Assembly: GCF_033153115.1 (NCBI RefSeq)
Contig: NW_026889751.1
Span: 62,001 to 126,000, forward strand
DNA from: Saccostrea echinata
Lineage: Eukaryota
DNA length: 64,000 nucleotides
Reading direction: 5' to 3'
In this document: positions 11,670-64,000 of the stretch, piece by piece
Position numbering within the stretch: the first letter of the stretch is position 1
Layout: every line of letters begins with the position of its first letter
The notes under the pieces: generated by a model
Databases searched by the model: none
What the model saw: only the letters and a program-made list of their open reading frames with translations
Told to the model about the DNA's origin: nothing
Translations under genes and position numbers: made by a program

Positions 11670-14600
11670 ATGGCGGATGTTCTGAGGATTTTGTACATTC
11701 TGATCCTGCCTGCTGTGATACATTCTGGTAGGAACAATGCTGATTTCCTCCTAAGTTGACTATACACTGTAACTGTACTGAAAAAGGATGTCACAGTTCG
11801 CAGAATCTATATTTGTATCTCAGCAACTTTGGCTACTTTGGTGCAAAACTGACTTTCCCCCTTTGCTTTAAATTCATTAATTTTGTGTTTAACAATAACA
11901 TTTGCCTTACGAATGACTGTGACTGCAGTCAACACGTGTACTTAAAAAAAGAGACCAAAGCAACGATTTCTGAATTAAGATGACCAAAGTCTAATCAAGG
12001 TTTACCTATACGTTCAAATTATCTTATAGCAAAATCTATGACAAATGTATCCTCTGGCTACGCGTGGAAATTAATATTTTTTTTCTAAACGAAATTGTTT
12101 TCAAGGTAATTTTTTAACTGCCATACCTAAGATATTTTACATTCATAGTACACACTAACCTCACCATGAAAAGTAGGAAGTAGAACAATTATTAGGTCAG
12201 AATAGATAAACATTACATCATATCTGACTGACTTTTCACACGTCATGAAGAATAATGATATCTCGAATTGTAGCAAACTTAAGAAGCAAATTTAAGGATT
12301 TGACATTTTAAATGTAATCTTAACAGTAACAAAGCAATTATAACAAAGTTTCATCTACCTGGTATCAGCTCTTTATAACGATAGTGTGTGTTTATCTTCA
12401 AATCTGCATTTTGACCAATGTTATCGGAATTTTGAGATTGATATTGGTTTTCCCTTTTCCCCTGCAATTCTCACTTGCCCTTTAGAGTTATAGAATGTCA
12501 GATTCTACCCCCAGATTCTGGAAGCTCCCACGGTTGTGGTGGCCATGGTTATCTGACAACCAATAACGGTCTGATTAACAGCCAGTCTCAGGGGTCTAGG
12601 TACCACAATAACGCGGATTGTACGTGGCGGATCCATGCTCCTGTAGGGAAGGTTATCAGACTTACTTCTACATACTTTAACCTGGAGGCAGATGATTCGT
12701 AAGTTTTCGCTACAGTTGGCTTTGTTCTGTTTCCTTCACCAAATTTTCATTTTCAACTTTTTTTTCTCATTTTTTCCCGGCTGGTGAAACTAAATTTAAT
12801 AGCTTAAATTTCATTTCTCTCACTTTTATGATAGAAATATGTTATCATAACATAAAAAACATTCAGCAAGCAGAGGGCATTTCTTTTTGAATTATTTTCA
12901 TTTTCACGGGTAAAGAAGTGTTGAAGGATTTTGTTTTAAATAAACAGATGCAGTTATGACTACCTGAATGTATATGATGGGTCAAATACAAATGCAAAAC
13001 TGCTTGGAGAATTTTGTGGACATAGATCAATAAACCTTGTGTCTTCTGGTCAAAACTTATACTTAGAATTCATAACAGATGACAGCGACGTATTCAGAGG
13101 ATTTGAATTATCATACAGATTCATTCAAAGAACAGGTAGGTAGAAAGTTATATATTATTGATTTATCATACCACCTCTTGAAAAACGGGGGTATATAGTG
13201 ATAGGGGTACCCATTTCTTATCCCCAACTCCTCCTGTACCACTGAGTAAAATTTATTGAGATTTCACAGAATCTTTTTTACATCTTGACATAGTGCACCT
13301 CCTATTTATTTTTCGTTTCAACTGGCCAAAACATTTTTTTTCCATGGCAAACATGGACACTGCCATTCTTTCTATAACATTGAGGGTACCCATCTCTTAA
13401 CCGTATCTCTTCCTATACCACTGAAAAAAATTTAACGAGACTTTCACAGGATCTTTATTGCATTGTGCCATTGTGCACCTATTATTTTTCGTTTCGATCG
13501 AACAGATATTTGGGGTTTTTCATAGCAAAACATGGACACTGCCATTCTTTCTATAACATTGGAGGTATCGATCTCTTATCTGCAACTCCTCCTATATCAC
13601 GGAATAAAATTTAATGAGACTTTCACAGAATCTTTCGAACATAGTGCCATTGTGCTGCTCCTACAATTTTTTTTATTTCGATCGGACAGATATTTGAGGT
13701 TTCCATAGCAAATCATGGTCACTGCCATTCTTTCTATACCATTGAGGGTACCCATCTCTTATCCGCAGCTCCTCCTATACCACTTCAATAAAATTTAATG
13801 AGACTTTCACAGAATCTTTATTACATTTTGCCATTGTGCACCTTTTATTTTTCGTTTCGATCGAACAGATACTAAACCGATCGATACCAGAAGCGATCTA
13901 AGCTCATTTCAAGTTGGTTGTTTAACGTCCCTTCAAGAACTTTCACTAATATTGAGATGCCACCACTTACCGGTGGAGGGCTGCAAATTTAGATATGTAC
14001 TCGGCATTTGCGGCCTTTCAGCAGTGAGGAATCTTTTTTGTGTCATCATATTAATAATAATAACTTTTATTTATTAAAGATAGCTGTGGTGGTCAAGATT
14101 TCCAATGTCAAAACCACAAGTGTGTAGACTACTCTTGGGTATGTGATGGTGATAATGACTGCGGAGACGGAAGTGACGAAAGAACTTGTACCACAACCAC
14201 TACCCCGATTTCCGGATCTGGTACAGCCCATCCTATTTCCTCAGGTAAGGAAAGGGTGAATAAATACATGTAATCAAATATCGTTTTTTTTTTTTGTTGT
14301 TTTTGTTTTTGATGAAGGTGTGATAATAAATCTAGACTCTCATTAAATTAATGCTAGGGGTTTGCCAGACGGACGAGTTTTCTTGCCCTGACCACACGTG
14401 TATCCCACAGATCTGGCGATGTGATGGTGACAATGATTGTGGAGATAACAGCGACGAACGGAATTGTGGAGGTTTGGCAGGAACTACCGTCTCTCCAGCT
14501 CTCTCATCCGGATGTGGAAGTCCAGGCACACAGACTGGCATGCTGGGAAGTTTCCACAGTTTGAATTATCCTTCAAATTACGATAGTGACATGAACTGTC

Positions 14601-17600
14601 GATGGGAAATCAACGTGCCTACAGGCATGGTGAGTTTTAACGTCATTTTAAATGTATACAGTGTATGTAAAGATCAAAAACATTTTAACCAAATATGCTT
14701 TTCTGAACTAAGGCACATTTAGGACGAACATTGCTACGAAAAAAAGGCGCAAACAAAAGATATGGTGAATTTTGCCTTTAAAATATTTAAATTAAGTTTC
14801 CACCAGGATTGTTTCTCGGCCACGTTAGTGTGGAAAATGCATTGCGCTTGAGAAACATTCTCGTGCTCATCAGAAAGACATAAGTTCCATGTGTGCTTGT
14901 TTAGTATTTCCTAGAAAACTATTTTTATATATTATTCAACAGCATGTCATTACTAAAAAACACTAGAGAGTTTCTGAGAGAAAATGTAGTTTCTACACTT
15001 TTATTGTCCTGGAACATGCCCGGACTCAAATCCATACAAAAACATGTTGGGTCATGTAAAAAAGACCTATACTTAATCAAAACATGCCAACCATTTGTGA
15101 ATTAAAAGATATATGGAAAGTACTCTAACTCAATTCATAAAATTTTTTTTATCTATTAATAATTTATTGAGGCTGTTATTCGTGCAAAAAGGGGAGCATG
15201 TTAGTACTACAAAGTAAATTATCAATCGTAAATATAAAAACTGTAATGAAATTGCTTTGTTAAGTAGCAATACATGTATATTTATTTCTAAAATCTGCAT
15301 TTAATTAGTTCACAAAAGCAATGTAAATTTAAATTTTTTTTTTTTTTGAGCTACTGATAAATACAATAATGATAATCTTTTTATTTCTGTTTAGCACATT
15401 AAATTGATTTTCGCTGATAAATTTGGATTAGAAGACGCCCAAAACTGCGATTATGATCGAGTCACAATTTATAATGGAAATCAAAATAATCTAATCGGTG
15501 AGTTCTTTTTTTTTCTTTTTTTTTTTTAAATTCCTATGAATATTTCTGTTCACTTTTTACCTTGGCAGTGTCTGTGTGCCAAAAACTTATTTTTGGGTTC
15601 AATTTCGGATTTTAAGGAAGATACTGTGGTTCACAACACCCCACCACCATGGTTCTGTCTAGTAATCACGTTATTGTTCAGTTCCTCAGTGATGGAAGTA
15701 ATGAGGAAATGGGATTTCTCTTACACTGGTCAGCGACGAACGGTAATGGTTAAACAGAAATCTTAACAAGTAAAATATATTATTGTATTCAATTTGTACA
15801 ATTTCTTAGATTTTAGACATTTGTAATGTTAAGTTATCTTACGAACACAAAGATACACTTAGAAATGTGAAGATATCGAACAGTGATAAAGCTCAAAAGT
15901 CCATTAGAACAATACAATTGGGAGCAGAAGACCTCTAAAAACATCAAACTATTTACTAACTGCTTTTTCTGTAGCATCTGTTGTGGTACCTGGGGATTCC
16001 CACACCACTCCATCACCGACCGGCTTGAACTGCACCAGAGACATATACATCAACGGTAGTACATCGGGGACGATCTCCTCTCCTAACTTTGGGGTTGGCC
16101 TCCAATATCCACCAAGATCTGGATGTATATGGAGATTTTTTGCACCATTTGGTTATGCTATACGCTTGGCATACACGCAATTCGGTGTTGAGGGTGGTCG
16201 ATCATGTCCATTTGATTCTGTTACCGTATTTGATGGACAAAGTTCAACCGGAAAAATGATAGCAAAAAATTGTGGAAACACACTTCCTGCCCCTGTTGTG
16301 TCCAAAACCAATAATATGTATGTCAGTTTTGTCAGTGATGGAAGCACACAAGACATTGGATTTACAGCCACTTATTCAGCCGTCAAATTAAATGGTAAAT
16401 ATTGTATTGTCTCAATGAAAACCTGTATGCCGAAAAAAAAAGCTATGTATCTGATTTAACTTTCACTTCTTTTGCAGTATCAACACAAGCTGTTAATACG
16501 GACCAAGCTTGTCATGGAAGCACGCCACTTGTCCTTAACAGGACTTCCGGCTTCATCTATTCTGAGAAATTTACGTTGGGAATGAATTACCCGGATAATC
16601 TAAACTGCAGATGGCACATTAAGGCACCTGCAGACAAAGTCATCACTCTCCAATTTAACGTAATTTATATTTTACTTCTTAGACTTTTCCAGATTTACCT
16701 TAGTTTTAATTTATAAAGTATGTCAAGACTTGTTTTTTCTTCAGACTTTTTACCTTGAGAAAGATCGTGCATGCCAATACGACAACCTACAGGTGCTGGA
16801 CGGACCATTTGCTAGATCGCCACTCATCGGAAAGTACTGTGGAATTAATTATCCACAAAAACTGACTTCTACAGCATCAGACCTCTATATTCGATTTCAA
16901 ACCGATGAAAGTGAAAACGAGATAGGGTTCAACATTACATACACAATCCATGATCCAATTCGTAAGTTGTTTAGATGATGACAAAGACAACCAAAGAATT
17001 ACTGTACTCATTACTTCTAAAAGAACATCCCATCTATACTTCTCTGTAGCGTACTATTTCTCTTTCTTGAATTGAATAATAAAAGAATTTGTGATAATCA
17101 TATCCTTGGGAAAAGAGCAGTCTAGAAATGCTCTACGTATTTTTTGTAGCTACGTGCTCACCAAATGATTTCACATGTAGTGACGGAACATGTATAGACA
17201 GAAGCTCCGTTTGCGATGGAAGAAATGATTGTGCAAGTGGCAATGACGAAGTGTTGTGCAGTAAGTAGGAAGAATGAATACTGACTTATAATTCAGCAAG
17301 TTGTATCCTTTAAAATTCACATAGCCTCCTCTTTCATGCAGGTTCCAGCTGTGGGGTACCACCTATAACGCCATCTTTGGGTAACTCGAAAATTGTTGGA
17401 GGTAAAGAAGCTACCCCGGGCAGCTGGCCTTGGCAAGCCTCCCTGCAGTATGGCTCGTTCAGAGACCACATGTGTGGAGGTACCCTGATCTCCCCACAGT
17501 GGGTCATGACAGCAGGACACTGTTTTGAGGAGTGTGTTCAAAATTATATCTTTAATCCATTGGAATTACGATCTCTCGTTTAAGCAAATATTCATTTTGA

Positions 17601-42068: not shown

Positions 42069-43532
42069 TTAAGTCCTGATTGCCTTCTTGCTTCCAGTGG
42101 AGATTCCTGTTTTTGCGGAACATCTCTTCTTCCTTCCATGGTTCTTCTCATTTCCTCTTTTCTTACCAAATATACTGGCGAACGTGGAGTCTTTCTTGGT
42201 GCGCATACGCGGCATTTCTACATTATGCGGACTTTCTACTATAGTGGGTCGGTAAGATGAAGTGTTTTGCTCTGCTAGAACTTTCATAAAAGATCCTATG
42301 GTGGCATTATGACCAGGTTTGGGTGGTTTTGTTTCGACCTTCGATAAATCGGGTTGACTTTTGTGGAATTTCTCTGGCTCTTTTATCCTTGCCCCTGGGG
42401 TTAAAGAAAGCAATGATAAAGTTTGATTAGGATGAATCCTGGGGGTCTCCTGTGGCGTTTCCTGTAGACTCTGAGGGTGTGACCTAAAAGCTTTTGTAGG
42501 TTCAGATTTAGAAAATGGAGGTGCGGTATGGTGTCCTCGTATTTGCTGTGGTTGTAAGCGCAATGGTGGGTCCTTTTTCACAACAAAATACGTTGTCTTG
42601 TTATCGTCTTCTGTGACCGCTTCCGCCACGGGGGCGGATACATGTATAATAGGTGTTTCGTAGTAATTGTGATGTAGCCTTAACAATCTGCTGCTGCCTA
42701 GAATGGCAGCTCGTTCGTAGTTAGATTTCCGTCTAAGGTTATACTGTTTTTCCTTCATTGATTGGCCTATTTCGGACCACTCCTCAGCACTTCTGAAGGT
42801 GTAACTGTCGGACTGACCTGGGCAGGCCCTGCCCTCCTTTTGAAGAATGTCAGTGATCTCTTTGTATCCTAGTCTTTTGGCATGAAGGTATGGTGTAAGT
42901 CCTAAGTTGTCAGAAACGTCAACAGACAACCGAAAACGACGAAACTCTTCCACTAATCTTCTAACTATTGTAACGTGACCACCTTGAGTGGCGTGGTGGA
43001 GGACCGTCATTCCCTCTGTATCCTTATCGGTGAGGTCATGGTCACCGTTCAGTATCTCTAGCAACAGGTCGACCTGTTCTGCACGACCTAGAATAGCAGC
43101 CCATGAGAGCAAAGACCTTTTGTGCTTGCAGTCTTTATGCTTTGGATCTGCTCCTTTTGATGTCAGATAGCGAAACATTTTTCTACGTTTTTCGTCACAA
43201 TCTATGTGAAGGGCACCAACAAGAACACTGTAGCCGTAATTATTTCTGCTGTTAATTTTGTATCCTCCATCAAGAATCAGCTTTACTTTTCTGAATCTTC
43301 CCTTGACTGCCGAATGAAAGAGATTATTGGCCATGCATGCGTTTACCCTGTCCACTCCAGAAGATCTGGATGATTGGCTAGAGGTCCGACTTCTTGTACG
43401 AGTCATTTCCGGTGATCTATTCTTTATCGTCTCCGATCCGAGCACTTCCCTGACCTGGTTCACATCCCCTACTTTCTCCATCTGATTCACCAATGATTTC
43501 ACTTCAATAACCGTTTCCTCTCTGAGAACCAT
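42069..43532 (-). CDS. Ankyrin-repeat protein, single coding exon, 487 aa (ANKRD34/63-like layout)
   Basis: Long ORF with about four ankyrin repeats (GMTVLHHATQGGH, GLTPYLHAKRLGY) and a basic, disordered C-terminus. Confidence 0.88.
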   Translation of the reverse strand: MVLREETVIEVKSLVNQMEKVGDVNQVREVLGSETIKNRSPEMTRTRSRTSSQSSRSSGVDRVNACMANNLFHSAVKGRFRKVKLILDGGYKINSRNNYGYSVLVGALHIDCDEKRRKMFRYLTSKGADPKHKDCKHKRSLLSWAAILGRAEQVDLLLEILNGDHDLTDKDTEGMTVLHHATQGGHVTIVRRLVEEFRRFRLSVDVSDNLGLTPYLHAKRLGYKEITDILQKEGRACPGQSDSYTFRSAEEWSEIGQSMKEKQYNLRRKSNYERAAILGSSRLLRLHHNYYETPIIHVSAPVAEAVTEDDNKTTYFVVKKDPPLRLQPQQIRGHHTAPPFSKSEPTKAFRSHPQSLQETPQETPRIHPNQTLSLLSLTPGARIKEPEKFHKSQPDLSKVETKPPKPGHNATIGSFMKVLAEQNTSSYRPTIVESPHNVEMPRMRTKKDSTFASIFGKKRGNEKNHGRKKRCSAKTGISTGSKKAIRT

Positions 43533-54812: not shown

Positions 54813-57800
54813 CTGGAAAAGGAAAATTTTTATACATTAATATTCCATTTATGCTGCTATTGAATAACTTACTCAGTCTTTTCATGAGTTACCAGGTATA
54901 CACAAATTTGTATTAAACATGTTCACTTTGCAAAACTTTTGATCCAAATCACTTGAAAAGTGCAAGTGTACTTTGTTAATTTCTTGTTTGTCAACAATTT
55001 TTCTAATAATTAAAAAAAAAGCATGTCTTGAAATAAATTGAATACCTTAACAAAATTATGTAACTGAGGATTTAGAGAAGTTCTGCCTTTTATTTTACAA
55101 GGAAAAAATTTAAATGGTAAGCATTATTGGGTAATTTAAGCTGCACTGTATTGCAGATAAAAAATGAAACTGCTAGTTGTATTTTTTTCCAAAGCAGTGC
55201 ACATCTGTGTCATGATATCATTAACATCAGATGAAATAAAGAACAGTGAAAACCCTTGTTTTCTGGCTTAATTCCAGAGTGGATTATAAACATAATGCCC
55301 ATAAGACAATGCTCACCTGAGTCACATTAATCATCAAGAATTAAAGCTTTTTAAATGGGCATGCAGATCTTTTTGATAACTATACCATTTTTCAACATAG
55401 CAATCAAAAACTTTAGTTTTAAAAGTAGAAAATGTTTTGTTTGGGGTCTCCATAGGACTTCAAACCAGTTTGTGATTTTAGCATGAAGCCAACCTGGAGA
55501 AGACTGAAATCTATTTCAAAAAGACTGAAAACTTTAGTTTACAAGGAATTTCAAAAAGTTAACAAATGACAAGACTTTTTTAATTAAACTGTTAGAAACG
55601 GAAGTGACTTGGCTGAAGCTGAAAATGAATCTCTCAACAAGACTGTAATGCCTAGCTTGGAATTACACACTTCTCAAAATCAGAAGCATCACGTTGGGAT
55701 TTTAACCAATTCCTTTAGAAAGTAACAAGAAGTCTCCATATTCTGCATTTATATGTATATCAATGTACAAAATTTACACATTTGAATATAGAGAAATGTT
55801 AAAAAGTGCACCATTCAGAAAGACAACAAAAACTTTGATTGTATAAACTCCGCTTAATTTAGGTAAAAAGCAAATGCAAGGTATAATTATGGTACTTAGT
55901 GTTTGAGTGATACATAAAGCAGCATATCTTAAGGGCTGTATTCATAACAGATTTCAATATAAACCTGTCATTCAAAAGATATTTCTACATTTTTATGCTA
56001 AATTTTCTTTCTTGCAATTTAACTAGCCTTTCTTATGTAAGATTGGTACACTGCAATGATAAAAATTGCATTTGATTTCAGGAAAATGGGATGTTCAGTT
56101 TTGGGATTTGCTAGGGAGAGTTATATAATTGCAATTCTCACATATTAGTTTTCAAATGGCGATGTAAATCTTTTTACAATGCATCATGTAGGTAAAGAGA
56201 CAAAAGAAGGCTGGGCCCCACAAGTGTAGTGCCAGAAGCTGCCAGTGGTTTTCATCCACCTTCCAACCAACAGGGAAAAAATTCTGATACGTAGTGTGGG
56301 CAATGTACATAAAAATGGAGTTCATGCCTGTCAAAGGACAAGTACCACAGAGCATTTTATCTAAATACTGTGTCATCAACAGCATATCTTATAAGATACA
56401 TTTTATTTAATTAACTCCATATTTAAACTTCCAATTATATGTACAGTTAATAATTTTTTTGAGTATAAACTGATGTCACTATGTACATATATGTGTATAT
56501 CAAGTATTTAATATAAGCATGTATATGTTAAAAAAAAATATCTTTATCTTTTAACAATGACTGTATCCCTCTTTTTTTTTTTTATTTATCTTTGAAATAA
56601 ACATCTTCTCTTAATTTTAGTAATATATCAAAACAGCAATATTCTTGTGTAGTTGAAAAAAAGTGAATAAAATCTCTCTTTGTTGTACGTCTAACTCACT
56701 GATCTAATTGATAAAACTCAGAAGTTATTGTTGATGATTTACTTTTTACATTAATGTGTAATTAATGAAGATAATAGAAGAGGTGTTTAGCACCTTACCT
56801 GGGAAATAAAATGGTGCCCCACTCCACACTTTATAAACATCTATGGTAAGGTAACAAAATGCTAACAAGAAAAAGGCAAAGCCTGCCATGCACAGAACAA
56901 AAGATAATGACCTGTAAAAAATAGAAGTATAAATGAACTAGAAAAATCTTTTCAGATAATAATCATTGTTTGGTTATTTTCAATAATTCTGAATATGTTT
57001 TTTTTCAAAATTAATTCTAATGTCATTTTCATAAATCATCCATATTGCATGCACAATGATAAAAGCACAGATAATATATTAATGATATAAACTGAGATTC
57101 AGTCTTTTTATATGATGTCTTACCATAAATTTTTATTGATTGGAATTGCTCCTCCATCTTTTTTAAATTCACATAAAGCACCGGCAATTATACACTACAA
57201 AACACCATAAACATACATGTACATGTTGAATTCATGTCCCATAAAATGTATCATGAATCTCTTCATGAAGTGTTAAAACATTAATATAACCTGATTTCTA
57301 GTGTAATTCACATTCTCCACAGCTGCATCCATTTGCAAAGTTTTTTTGATTCTAGGCCTTAAAACTACATAAGTCCAGAAGGAATTTGACGTACTTGAAC
57401 ATATCATCTTAATTAAAGATCACAGCCACCTTAAAGTGTGTGACACGCCTACCTAAGATGCATTAACTAACCAGTTTGATTATTCTATGCCAAATAATTT
57501 TCCAATTAAGAACCAGAAGGTTTTGCCATATTTGACCTTAACACCATTATTTGTCACAGAGACTTATATTTCAAGTGTGACACACATTCCACCAAAAATG
57601 CATCAGTTGAAAAAATTTGATGATTCTAAGCCACATAATATTTAAGTTACAAAGCTAACAGATGAATAAGGATGGACATGCATGCCATACATACACCCCA
57701 TTTAAAGGTACATGTATAAAATTTGAAAGGGAACGTTATCTACACTTACCAAAATTACCCCCCAAATTATAAATCTCTTCACTCGGGCTGCTGGCTCTTT

Positions 57801-60800
57801 ATATGTCATCAAAATTTTACCAGCCTATATAAAACAAAAATATCATTTATTGTTGTAAGAGCAATGTAATTATAGTTTCAAAGCTGGTATAAATGTTTTT
57901 TTTTATTCCAAATTTGATGAATAGTTTTTTAATTTAACATAACTAATATCTATAACCAAATAAAGTTGAATTTATTTAACATACTAAAAATCATGCACCT
58001 GTAGTCTCTTACCTGTAACCCTAAAAAACACAAAAATATGGAATTCAGTGTTCCTAAAAGCCCCTCTGGATCATAAGGCACTGTGGTTTTATATATCTCC
58101 TGTAAATCAAGAGATAGATTGTTATCAGAAAACTTGATCCAACTTAACATCATTTAATACACTAAGAAATATATCTGTTCTTCAAACCTTGCATGTAGGG
58201 CTTTGGTAGATGTGTCCTTCCCCAAACACTTTTCTATCAATGTAGCCTGCAGCACCACCTGTACAGTTCATATGTTGTCCATTTTCATGTAGACCACCAG
58301 GTCCTACATATCCTCTGAAAGAAAACACAAGAATAACTTAAAACATCAATAAACACAACAAAGGAAGATTCTTACTTTAGAAAACAGACAGCAGTGTTCA
58401 AAATATTGTATAAAAACTGAAAAAAATTTCACTGTATAATTCTGTGGCCTTGATGCTTTATAATTGTCCTGGCAATGACACAACTCATGTTACAAGACAC
58501 ATTTACTCTAAACAATTCACGACCATGCTACATCTTCCCATCAAACACCTTAGTCCTACTTTTGATACATTATATAACAGCTTTTAATGATTTACATTTC
58601 CAAATTCTCAGCTTGTCAGGAAGCAGGCCAGACATATACAGTAAACCACAGTTGTATGTAGCAAACATGAATTTACACTTACAGGGAAGTGATTTTCATT
58701 TCAGTTTTAAGATGTGTTGTGAACAGATATATAGAATTACATTTGTAATGAATCAAAATTGTTAGTCCCTGGCACTTCACTATATTAAAAAGTTTTGCTG
58801 TATGCTGATCATGATCAAGGCATGAGAAACATGATTTTTTAAAATCCATTAACAAAAAAGCTCATGATTAATATACAACATTGCTCTCCTCTCTCTCTCT
58901 TTCTATCTTACTTGGGACAGCCCGGTACATCTAATACGAAGGTGATAACAATATGGGCAGTCACAAAAACGAGATAAAATATCCATTCCAGCCAATAATC
59001 CACAATGTCTCGGATAAAGCCCCAGTAGGTGTACTGAAAGTAAGGAATTAAAATTATCAGTTTGATGACTGCTTTATTTTTTACAAACAGGTTAATTCTT
59101 CACACTGAATGGATCCATCCTTTGTCCATATGATAAATATTTCTTATTCAAGTACCTTGTTTATCAGTTGAGTTTGAAAATCAGAACAAATGCTTAATTA
59201 AGGGAATAGCAAATTCTAGAAATAATAACTTAAAAAAAGCATATACATGTACATGTATACATATAGCTCTTTGGTACACTGTAAGCTGATATAAATAATT
59301 TTGAATCAACTGAGTCCAAAATAATAGGTACCAGTATTTTGCTTTAACCATCCTCTACCTGTATATAAATATGAAATCATTCATTAAACCGAGAAAACCT
59401 TGTGGATGTGATTCATATGATTATTTTGTTTCAAACTACTTCAAGACATATCATTTATTTTATTCTTTAACTTTGACCCTTGCTTTTGATTACAAATCTT
59501 CATTTAATATTCCCCTATGTGTGACTTGGGAATGGAGTCAACAGGCAAGATTTTGGTTATTGAGAGATATCAATGATACAGACATATGACTTTAATGATA
59601 AATCAATTGATATAAAAATACACTGTCATCTGCAGGGACCTTTACTCTCCCTGACAGGCAGACAGACAGATAAAGTGATGTCTATATATCCGCCATGCAC
59701 GGGTGACACAAATAACATATGAAATTTGAGATTCCTTTTATTTTAAGTATAAATATTGCTGTTTCTTAAATAAATTCCACCTTGAAAGCTTTTATTTATC
59801 AATGTTTTAGTTTTACTATGCGAAACAATCATTTTTACTTTTTTATCAAGCCTTCTAAATTTCAAGCGTATGTCTCAGTACATCTTGCAAGACCTGCTGA
59901 AGAAGATGACTGGTTAACACACAGTTGTATTTTACCTTGTGCTAATGTATAAATTAAGAGCTAGGTTGTTGTTAATGAATAAAAATTCCATCTTATTCAA
60001 ATTAAGTCAAATGCAAAAGCAATTTATTTTGCCCAAAGTGGCCCATGTCAAAAAAAATATATATTTATGGAGATCCTGTTGAATAGTAGCCCTCTCTTGA
60101 AAACATCAAATTAAAAATATCGGAGAGGGCTATATTGTTGAAGCTAATTTATGTATATCTAATCATCGGGCTCCAAAACTCAGCAAACCAACTTAACTTC
60201 AAAATCAAATTTGAAAGAACAAAACAAAACTTACTGCATACCTACCATGCTAACATCCACTGTTTTGGCAAAAAACATGTGAATGGATGCCACGACAAAG
60301 TATGTTCCAGCGAACCTCTGTAATACGCCAGGTATTCTCAGCTTAGTAAGAGCAGTAGCTGTCAAAACAAATAAAAACTGTAGATTATGATAAAAAAAAA
60401 ACCCACAAAGTGTAGATTTTAACTTGGACCTAAGTTATATATGTCTCTAAATAAAATGTGTTTACCTTGTGAAGTGTCATTCAATATATACACATGTTAA
60501 AGATTTTATTCTTTGTTTAATTTTTTTTTCCTTTTTCACATGGGATTGATAGAATATTTACATCCAATGAATATTATGTCCTTTATTTCTTAAGAAAACC
60601 ATTGCTGTTTATCTGTCAGTAAACAGCAATAAGCATATCACCTGTACAGATTTCTTGAGCAGTGGCTGTTCCATCAATGAAACTTACAATGACATATATA
60701 TCAACAATACACTATTTCATCTACTAAATCCTACTTTCAATGATTATTTGTACAGATATAAGTATAAACAATAAAATGTCTTTCTTTGTTTGTTAGTATG

Positions 60801-63344
60801 GGAAATAACTATGCAGCTATTGCAGAAAAAAATTACATATGCATTTTTTCTGCAACAGCTGCAACATTAATTCCCATACTAACAACCAAAGAAAGCATTT
60901 TATTGTTTAAATAATTTTACTTCATATACATGTATATGCAAATTTTCTATAATTCAAGGCTAAAAATACTAGAAAGCTTAAGCATTTACTGAGAAAAGAT
61001 TGTCAACACAAAGAAAAATTTCCTCTGTAATAAATTCCTACATAAGAAGTCTGTACAATGTAAGTTAGACCTTGCTAATTTGCTATGATTGTTTTAATGC
61101 AGATACATACCCTCACATCCTCCCGTGTTTATCAGTAAACCCAACACAAACAAAATGCAGCTCCTCTTAAATATTTTCCAGAAAATTTTGTGTTTGGGGG
61201 TGACTCTTCTTAACAGTCCTGTAAATGAGTACACCATGGCTGTGCCCATAATCCAAATAAACCTGCAATGTTACACAATCCAAAAATGGACTTTCAAATC
61301 TGCAACGCTTCCAAACTATGTTTAGCAAAGTATACTCATTTATTACAAAAAAATATGTAAATTTATTATTCATACAAAATCAAAATTAAATTCCCATATA
61401 AAAATCGAAACTTATTATTTTGCATGTTTTCTAACTTTATTTTAAATTCCTTGAGGGAATTAATTAAAAATATTGTAAATTACAAGAAAGAAAACAATCC
61501 TTTGACCTACACAATGCTGTTAAATGTAGCAAACAATATGCACCAATGTTTAGTAAATAGAAAGTGCAGCAAAACAGAAGATCAGTGAGAGGTACTTACT
61601 CAGTGATAGCGAGTATATATAGGGTAAGTAAAATACGAGTGAATTACCATGGAAACACAAGATCTGCCACAGTCAGACCATTCCAGTCAGAGTGGTCAAA
61701 AAACCAGTAGCCACCACCCCCATAGTTCACAAAATTCATGATGGTCAAACTGATTCTACAAGCACCACATGCAGACAAGAAAATTCCATGTATATTTACT
61801 GCTAATGAATCTAAATACTAGTGATGGCATAAAGGCTTTTACCGGTTAGTTAATAGAGAATAAAACAACAACTCAATGATGCAAGCTGTACTTGGTGAAA
61901 CAAAAGCAATCACTGAATAATAAAAACATAAAAATACATAAGAGTGATTGTTTTATTAGTAGATTATAAATTGATATTTCTTAATCACTTCCAAAGCACT
62001 GTAGATTCCTAAATGTACGTTAAGAATTTATAAACACGTAATTTTGTGAGAAGCACATCTTGCGAAATAAAATTACTTGACAATACTTTTATTTTTCTAT
62101 GGATGAAATGAATGTAAACAAGAGGCCCATGGTGACATTGCTCACCTGAGCACTTCGGCTACAAAAAAAATGAAATTAGTTCAGTACTAAAAAATTTTAA
62201 TATAAAAGTGTTGCCCCACCCTACCTCGGGGGTCATGATTTGAAAAAACTTGATTCTACACTACCTGAAGATGCTTTTATGTAAAAATGACCAATCATGG
62301 CTTAGCTGTTATTAACAGTAAGACTTAAAAGATTTTCCTTATGTATTCCTATGTAAAAATTGGGTCACCCACTGTGGCCCCTCCCTACACCGGGGGTCAT
62401 GGTTTGAACAAACTTGCTTCTACACTATCTGAAGATGCTTTTATGTAAATATGACCAATCATGGCTTTGCTGTTCTTGAGAAGAAGAATTTTAAAAATTT
62501 TTCCTATGTATTCCTATGTAAAACTTTTATCACCCATTGTGGGGGGTTCATGATTTGAATAAACTTGAATCTTTACTACCTCAGGATGATTCCACAAAAG
62601 TTTCATAAATTCTAGCACAGTAGTTCTTGAGGAGAAGATTTTTAAATGATGCCATAAATTTTCACAAATTTATAATTATCTCCCCTTGAAACAAGGCAAG
62701 GCCCTTCAAACTTGAATCTCCTTTACCCATGGATACTTTGTGGCAAGTTTAGTTGAAACTGGCCCAGTGGTTCTTCAGAAGAAGATGAAAATGTGTTTTA
62801 AGTTTACATCGATGACAACAGCCAATGGACAAATTTTGATCAGAATAGCTCACTTGAGCCTTCAGCTCAGGTGAGCTAAAAACTCAACATCAACAGTCCT
62901 CTTACAATTTCATATTCTCACGATTTGACATTTATGAGTCATTTCACAAAATTAAGTCCTCGCAAAAAATAAGGAATTTACAGTATAATGTAAGTTCAAA
63001 AGACTTGTATTAAAATGAAGTGCTCTCATACATCTCATCATATATGAAATCTGACACATTTACTTCAAAGTAATACTTCATTAGCATGTAGAAAATAATA
63101 TAAAATACAGTAACATAAATCAAACACAGACTGTTAGTAAATGCAAGTCAGAGGAGATTGAAAATGATTGCTAATTCGGTAGCTATATATAGTCACATCA
63201 ACACCAAAGCAAAGAATGACATCATGCATGTCTCACCATGGAAACACAAGGTCAGCAAATGTTAAACCATTCCATCGACTATGACGGAAAAACCAGTATC
63301 CCCCTCCGCCGTAATTAACAAATATCATAACGATTATACTAATC
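54637..63344 (-). CDS. HGSNAT: Heparan-alpha-glucosaminide N-acetyltransferase, 3' part. Exons 63237-63344 OR 61648-61755, then 61111-61262, 60246-60358, 58912-59033, 58188-58314, 58013-58099, 57750-57824, 57124-57194, 56799-56911, then 56152-56327 OR 54637-54812
   Basis: Motifs [98 protein letters not shown]. The 5' exons lie beyond the window. Confidence 0.95.
56152..56327 (-). CDS. HGSNAT: HGSNAT alternative terminal exon, proximal copy (176 nt coding)
   Basis: ctttgacag acceptor. [24 protein letters not shown]...[11 protein letters not shown]. Confidence 0.88.
60765..60909. mobile_element. Palindromic fold-back element (MITE-like) in HGSNAT intron
   Basis: taaacaataaaatg.tttctttg.ttgttagtatgggaa..tgcagct.ttgcagaaaaaa, then its reverse complement after a short loop. 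Confidence 0.8.
61648..61755 (-). CDS. HGSNAT: HGSNAT catalytic-His exon, copy B (108 nt)
   Basis: [36 protein letters not shown], with AG/GT boundaries and phase 2-2. Confidence 0.9.
62116..62882. mobile_element. HINE with ~165-bp monomers, between the duplicated HGSNAT exons
   Basis: aaacaagaggcccatgg..gctcacctgag start, agctcacttgagccttcagctcaggtgagctaaaa end. Same family as 47595-48912. Confidence 0.8.
63237..63344 (-). CDS. HGSNAT: HGSNAT catalytic-His exon, copy A (108 nt)
   Basis: [36 protein letters not shown], with AG/GT boundaries and phase 2-2. Confidence 0.9.
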
Positions 63345-64000
63345 CTGAAAGTCAAAATTGTCTGATTATAAAATTAAAAGCCCTTTGTGGTCACCTATGT
63401 ATCATTTTCTTAGCATTCTCCCTATACATATATCACTTTCATGTCACCAAAAAAATTATAATATAAAATCATAAATACAATGTATTTGTAGACACCATAG
63501 TTTAAACTTTTCCTTATTACCGGTAGTCAGAAAGGTACATTTATTAACTACCATGGTACTACTTTGGTATTTCTCCAAAGGATAAAAGATCGATAAAGAC
63601 AAAATGGAGGTAAATCCCTGTACACTAGCTATTAGACCTAGATAATGAGTGTATTTGCTAACAAACTATTTTATCAACATGTATATATATAATTTATTTA
63701 CATGTAGATTTACATGTAGAGTTTATAGTTTCATTGCTTTGACTTTTAATCTGACTTAAGGGCAATCCAGACACAAAAGGAAAGTAACATTATTTATAGT
63801 TATAATAAATAAACAGAAATAATAGGAATTCAGTTTTCCTAAATATTCATATAAAAATTAAAGCCACTTTACAATATTTTGCTTGAATGTGATGTTTTAT
63901 AAATATTGGATTATGTGCAATTTGTGCACAAAAATAGCTTTTAAAATAGCTGTTGAATGATATTGTATGACTTCAAACAGGTCAAATTTTACACCTTATC

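Follow-up and report, generated by a model that had tools for sequence, protein, structure and literature searches.

The gene for HGSNAT (heparan-alpha-glucosaminide N-acetyltransferase), the lysosomal enzyme whose loss underlies Sanfilippo syndrome type C, runs along the minus strand of a 64,000-nucleotide (nt) stretch of the genome of the oyster Saccostrea echinata (contig NW_026889751.1, positions 62,001 to 126,000; hereafter the window), and its catalytic segment is encoded there twice, by two homologous exons of equal length that we call A and B. The tandem exon pair is real, lies far beyond chance and stems from an old duplication. Probably, this ancient pair is used mutually exclusively, the swap between the exons retuning rather than disabling the active site. 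The two exons and their surroundings, in window coordinates and in the order of transcription, are as follows.

63345-64000 in the window, continuing to window-equivalent 64160, minus strand: intron upstream of A (the upstream exon begins at 64161)
63237-63344, minus strand: exon A (R-H-S-R form), 108 nt, phase 2-2, coding for transmembrane helix 2 (TM2), luminal loop 1 and the start of TM3
61756-63236, minus strand: intron between A and B, 1481 nt, carrying four tandem repeat units at about 62209-62800
61648-61755, minus strand: exon B (D-H-S-D form), 108 nt, phase 2-2 as in A, with the catalytic Asn, His and Asp kept
61263-61647, minus strand: intron between B and the next constitutive exon, 385 nt
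61111-61262, minus strand: downstream constitutive exon, whose first base completes the Trp codon of A or B (from RNA joints and tblastn)

The coordinates and translations given in an earlier note on this DNA, which had described two stop-free 108-nt exons of phase 2-2 with canonical splice sites on the minus strand, were reproduced. Exon A is bordered by an AG acceptor (..tttcag/G, the slash marking the border) and a GT donor (CCATG/gtgaga), and exon B likewise by ..cttgtag/A and CCATG/gtaatt; neither has a stop in its reading frame, which opens at the second base of each exon. The assignment of both exons to HGSNAT held as well, as each of the two translations of 35 amino acids (aa) matched the human HGSNAT chains 8vkj, 8jkv and 8tu9 at residues 277-311 with an E of about 1e-13. 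A six-frame search of the 923-Mb assembly gave three matches to the A/B exon, two of them A and B themselves and the third an exon of a paralogous gene on another contig (C46). A third exon copy at the HGSNAT locus was ruled out, the third match in the genome being this paralogue.

Exons A and B are identical at 75 of 108 nt and at 28 of 35 residues. Among the 35 codons, 15 differ synonymously and seven non-synonymously, and only 15 of the 35 third codon positions are identical. The non-synonymous divergence (dN) is 0.176, and the synonymous divergence (dS) is saturated, beyond estimation. Similarity between the two ends at the exon borders, as found by repeat finding, and the flanking introns (100 nt on each side) are no more similar to each other than shuffled sequence.

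Both forms are present in annotated proteins of the same species. Three RefSeq isoforms of S. echinata stem from this locus, XP_061196042.1 (X1), XP_061196047.1 (X2) and XP_061196055.1 (X3), and their exons map to it at 100% identity. Exon A is used in isoforms X1 and X2, the latter combining it with a proximal terminal exon, and exon B in isoform X3, which maps at 100% to 61647-61754. Isoforms X1 and X3, both of 636 aa, differ only at seven residues, i.e. by the exchange of exon A for exon B: 259 I/L, 260 I/T, 261 V/I, 263 I/N, 276 R/D, 279 R/D and 285 F/V. The RefSeq proteins stand in here for the spliced gene model.

RNA data consisted of assembled contigs from four runs labelled 'RNA?' (X1, X3, X5 and X6; these run names are distinct from the isoform names), placed on window coordinates 60001-66000. 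The run labels refer two of them to one organism, one to a second organism and one to a third, about 5% diverged. Depth was zero in the introns at 63001-63200 and 63401-64000 and the joints had CT..AC ends, from which it follows that the contigs represent complementary DNA. The main contig of all four runs joined 64161 to 63344, 63237 to 61262 and 61111 to 60358, a path in which A is flanked by the upstream exon and the next constitutive exon and B is skipped; the junction from 63237 to 61262 had been predicted in the earlier note. Exon B had no depth in the contigs of runs X1 and X3. In run X5, a 181-nt contig with a depth of 15.5 (against 112.7 for the main contig) was placed on 61597-61755 and ended exactly at the B acceptor, beyond which it carried 26 letters not matching intron sequence, which indicates splicing at the B acceptor. 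Run X6 had a depth of 6.4 in the bin of B and of 133.8 for the main contig; the three differences listed for it inside exon A (at 63287, 63302 and 63305) are all at third positions and synonymous. In the RNA sets examined, A is thus the default form, and B, where it is seen, is a minor one with roughly one tenth of the depth of A. A joint from A to B, i.e. from 63237 to 61755, was predicted to be absent and was not found among the RNA-contig joints listed, with 365 further joints not displayed. Taken together, the exchange of A for B between isoforms X1 and X3, the contigs joining the upstream exon, A and the next exon, the B contig at lower depth and the corresponding isoform pairs of other molluscs described below support the proposal of mutually exclusive use.

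The conservation of the pair was followed by cluster look-ups and motif extraction, which gave isoform pairs with identical flanks that differ in this segment only. The residues around the catalytic His were found to be as follows.

S. cucullata and Magallana gigas: A RHSR, B DHSD
C. angulata: only the B form was retrieved, DHSD
Scallops Argopecten, Pecten and Mizuhopecten: A HHAR or HHSR, B AHSD
Mytilus (one of its genes): A KHSK, B NHSD
Mercenaria and Ruditapes: A RHSK, B DHSD
Patella: A KHSK, B DHSD
Haliotis rufescens, with three variants: A KHSI and SHSR, B DHSD
Babylonia: A RHSK, B SHSK
Littorina: A RHSK, B THSI

Among the sequences retrieved, the chiton Liolophura and Octopus had an A-like form only. 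More than ten species have an annotated B-type isoform, and no RefSeq mollusc model holds both A and B. In a maximum-likelihood tree of the 37-residue segment, in which the few columns give weak resolution, a single branch (94/76) splits all 13 A exons from all 12 B exons, and in no species do A and B come out as sisters. This grouping by type and the saturated dS point to one duplication before the divergence of bivalves and gastropods, with purifying selection on both copies since then. A recent duplication or gene conversion was ruled out by the saturated dS, the unrelated introns and the grouping by type in the tree. Together with the 15 synonymous codon differences, the same evidence upholds the claim that both copies are old and under selection.

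Copies of the catalytic exon were encountered also outside this set. A gene model of the spider Caerostris extrusa has two of them in series (H-H-A-H, then E-H-A-H), and an ENA contig of 10,336 bp has two about 19 codons apart. Because of these copies, tandem duplication of the HGSNAT catalytic exon may be recurrent in animals. An Acropora gene model that scored high as a duplication candidate turned out to be a scrambled model with no duplication, and a Logan fragment in the cluster of the B isoform covers the C-terminal part only and is uninformative on B.

What the exchange might mean for the enzyme can be judged from the human protein, in which the corresponding segment comprises TM2, luminal loop 1 and the start of TM3 (PMC11199644, PMC11357348). 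According to the same structural work, the acetyl carbonyl of acetyl-CoA is held by N286 and its cysteamine is touched by M282; H297 serves as the catalytic base beside the glucosamine amine, and its dyad with D307 lowers the pKa of the His to about 4, by which it works at lysosomal pH (PMC11199644, PMC11357348). In the alignment to the human chains, the equivalents of N286, H297, D307 and M282 are kept in both A and B, with the Asn in an FVNY motif, the Asp in an ADL motif and the His between them. The seven differences between A and B comprise four in TM2, the two at positions 276 and 279, which are the residue before the catalytic His (His-1) and the second residue after it (His+2), and one in TM3. 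The residue right after the acetyl-CoA-contacting Met is Ile in A, and in B Asn (oysters and abalone) or Cys (scallops, mussels and clams). Twelve of 13 A exons have R or K at His+2, and 10 of 12 B exons have D there. Residues 276 and 279 are most likely exposed at the luminal entrance. As the rest of the protein is common to both isoforms, the two positions cannot both rely on one fixed partner.

In the mechanism that we favor, each mRNA would take either A or B between the exon ending in ..SLDTFRG and the exon at 61111-61262, giving two predicted, catalytically complete enzymes of 636 aa. The swap would retune the active site with the catalytic Asn, His and Asp retained. His+2, and usually also His-1, is positive in A and negative in B; it is placed on luminal loop 1 beside the glucosamine pocket. 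A flanking Arg might lower the pKa of the His and attract sulfated, anionic chains, while a flanking Asp might raise it and attract a protonated amine or less anionic substrates. In B, the change from Ile to Asn or Cys lies beside the Met that contacts the cysteamine of acetyl-CoA. The outcome could be a different pH optimum, a different compartment, or a different pull on anionic versus cationic glucosaminides. This comes near to the proposal of the earlier note, in which a basic entrance would suit heparan sulfate and an acidic one might suit chitosan or chitin oligomers or a different pH.

A number of findings weigh against this interpretation, either in its splicing part or in its catalytic part. 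The B contig of run X5 extends 51 nt beyond the B donor into the downstream intron, and the 26 letters upstream of B were undisplayed, so that the partner exon of the B acceptor is inferred rather than read. The RNA evidence as a whole consists of contigs and not of raw reads, contig depth being a poor measure of expression and rare variants being lost from contigs. Isoform X4 of Mercenaria mercenaria, 36 residues shorter, has neither A nor B and joins ..SLDTFRG to the next exon, i.e. an in-frame double skip; the RefSeq models are automatic, and homology may carry over between species. Since 108 nt keeps the frame, nonsense-mediated decay (NMD) would be unable to police double inclusion or double skipping. 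Docking and selector RNA pairing was searched for in the three introns by means of inverted repeats and a windowed duplex scan, and the best duplexes (-22 to -23 kcal/mol) were no better than those of shuffles. Finally, His-1 and His+2 vary widely among 150 HGSNAT representatives, with single-copy orthologues including D-H-S-D, D-H-S-Y, A-H-S-K and N-H-S-K, and the B exons of caenogastropods are non-acidic (S-H-S-K and T-H-S-I). The charge reversal around the catalytic His put forward in the earlier note therefore stands in part: the charge at His+2 is type-specific, R/K in A and D in B, in bivalves, limpet and abalone, but the variation in single-copy orthologues and the non-acidic caenogastropod exons do not fit a general rule.

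With regard to how exclusivity might be enforced, all splice sites in the A/B region are of the GT-AG type, and the 1481-nt length of the intron between A and B means that there is no steric block. A 22-nt pair with 77% complementarity between the B donor and the upstream intron was judged to be due to chance, as it is partly the palindrome CCATGG. Of the known exclusion mechanisms, i.e. competing RNA pairing, steric hindrance, incompatible spliceosomes and NMD, no sign was found at this locus.

The strongest rival explanation accepts a true mutually exclusive pair and holds the two enzymes to be catalytically equivalent, the pair being kept for splicing control by tissue or stage, for stability at the interface of the luminal and membrane domains, for dimer properties or for trafficking. 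The variability of His-1 and His+2 in single-copy orthologues and the missing acidic residues in caenogastropods both speak for it. The exon also includes the positions matching human G262 and N273, at the interface of the luminal and membrane domains (PMC11357348), and four of the seven differences are in TM2, outside the loop. We nevertheless regard equivalence as rather unlikely, because the charge at His+2 follows the exon type in bivalves, limpet and abalone, and because the differing residues adjoin the catalytic His and the acetyl-CoA-contacting Met. With the rest of the protein in common, a fixed salt-bridge partner serving both Arg and Asp would also be improbable.

That exon B is a relic or splicing noise, the working enzyme coming from A alone, is very improbable. 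B is missing in the contigs of two runs (X1 and X3) and low in the other two (X5 and X6), and its acceptor has a weaker pyrimidine tract, as such an origin would have it; but B has an intact frame, intact splice sites at either end and all three catalytic residues (Asn, His and Asp), the B exons of oyster and abalone agree at all but 4 of 37 residues despite the saturated dS between A and B, and the annotated B-type isoforms of other species are as numerous as described above. Least credible of all is a normal co-inclusion of both exons giving a protein with a repeated segment, for even if 108 nt preserves the frame and the Caerostris model offers a parallel, the main contig of every run links A straight to 61262, mollusc RefSeq isoforms with both exons are lacking, and the extra transmembrane helix would be expected to invert the downstream topology.

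Returning to the mutually exclusive pair with a retuned active site, a more far-reaching version can be offered tentatively, at somewhat below even chance. By exon choice, one HGSNAT gene may give two biochemically distinct lysosomal acetyltransferases, an arrangement that most conchiferan molluscs would have kept over about half a billion years. The charge at His+2 and the change from Ile to Asn or Cys in the acetyl-CoA tunnel might then shift the pKa of the catalytic His and the preference for substrate or acyl donor, and the minor B form would act at a different pH, in a different compartment or on a glucosaminide other than heparan.

The remainder of the gene was traced by tblastn with HGSNAT proteins, and comprises the following coding exons.

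60246-60358, about 58911-59033, 58188-58316, 58010-58102, 57123-57260 and 56797-56910, minus strand: further exons
56155-56328, minus strand: proximal alternative last coding exon (isoform X2), 58 residues
54640-54825, minus strand: distal alternative last coding exon (isoforms X1 and X3), about 62 residues

The upstream exon, with ..SLDTFRG at its end, has its border at window-equivalent 64161, just beyond the window. Aligned in full length, the B isoform matched the human HGSNAT chains over residues 94-663 (E 1e-129). An hmmscan of the full-length isoform proteins assigned them to no family, neither HGSNAT_cat (PF07786) nor DUF5009 (PF16401), and a whole-genome scan with PF07786 reached no exon of this gene, giving only two sub-threshold matches elsewhere. 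Precomputed matches to PF07786 or PF16401 are present in many close mollusc orthologues, and the missing Pfam match is accordingly read as limited sensitivity of the models and not as evidence against membership in HGSNAT. As the Pfam models fell short of these proteins, homology to HGSNAT was assessed by phmmer against PDB chains. Some accessions among the RefSeq HGSNAT records of the Pacific oyster are at version.1, beside later versions.

The two C-terminal types, from the proximal and the distal last exon, occur also in oysters, scallops, mussels, clams, Patella and Haliotis. All four combinations of A or B with the two terminal exons are annotated in Patella, so there is no obligate coupling between them in the annotation. 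Oyster isoforms further have an optional cassette of 42 residues that precedes the catalytic exon and belongs to the luminal or linker part (690 versus 648, 679 versus 637 and 678 versus 636 residues); this insert is not present in the S. echinata isoforms retrieved.

The paralogous HGSNAT gene has a single copy of the catalytic exon (C46:2629510-2629614), with D-H-P-P around the His. It falls in a separate, mollusc-wide group with D/E-H-P-P in Pecten, Mizuhopecten, Mytilus, Mercenaria and Haliotis. For this gene, two overlapping tblastn matches at 14485-14643 and 14837-14992 (locus-local numbering) might represent another duplicated exon. Within the window, the repeat in the intron between A and B (about 62209-62800) is built of a unit of about 150-165 nt repeated four times in tandem. 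With many chimeric joints and an RNA-contig depth of up to 1e4-1e5, it is marked as a very abundant, transcribed repeat family. An uninterrupted open reading frame of 487 aa at 42069-43532 on the minus strand is unusually long for this intron-rich region, and may be a mobile element or an intronless gene.

The anatomy of the pair is solid, and its splicing pattern is well supported. For genome annotation this is an ordinary result, as the A and B isoforms are already modelled in RefSeq, and mutually exclusive exons from tandem duplication are of a well-known kind. Full-text literature searches for a paper that connects HGSNAT to mutually exclusive exons, to oysters or to molluscs came back empty. 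Structural work is currently asking how the His of HGSNAT can act as a base at lysosomal pH, and the mollusc exons constitute a natural, long-conserved swap of the segment with the Asn, His and Asp in an otherwise identical protein, i.e. a ready pair for testing the effects of neighboring charge on pH optimum and substrate attraction.

Among known systems, human HGSNAT itself (8vkj, 8jkv and 8tu9) is of the same orthologous family, and TM2, luminal loop 1 and TM3 with N286, H297 and D307 make up its equivalent of the exon. The solved human chains have K-H-A-S around the His, whereas the oyster has R-H-S-R or D-H-S-D, and Ile or Asn beside the acetyl-CoA-contacting Met. With exon clusters from tandem duplication, such as that of the muscle myosin heavy chain (PMC3912159), the pair shares adjacent homologous exons of the same length and phase and a deep conservation; mrp-1 is another mutually exclusive cluster of this origin, as cited in PMC7434440. 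Unlike in the known clusters, no competing RNA structure, steric block or NMD mechanism is evident for A and B. The nearest functional analogue is COQ-2, whose exons 6a and 6e are mutually exclusive in nematodes, platyhelminths, annelids and molluscs (PMC7434440). Common to COQ-2 and the HGSNAT pair are two equally long homologous exons, of which only one is taken at a time and which remodel the core of a membrane enzyme, with conservation across phyla including molluscs and with few type-specific residues invariant. The enzyme family and the chemistry differ, and the switch of COQ-2 between ubiquinone and rhodoquinone precursors has been shown genetically and biochemically, whereas the HGSNAT pair is known from sequence. 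After COQ-2, HGSNAT would be a second mollusc membrane enzyme whose core is exchanged by mutually exclusive exons.

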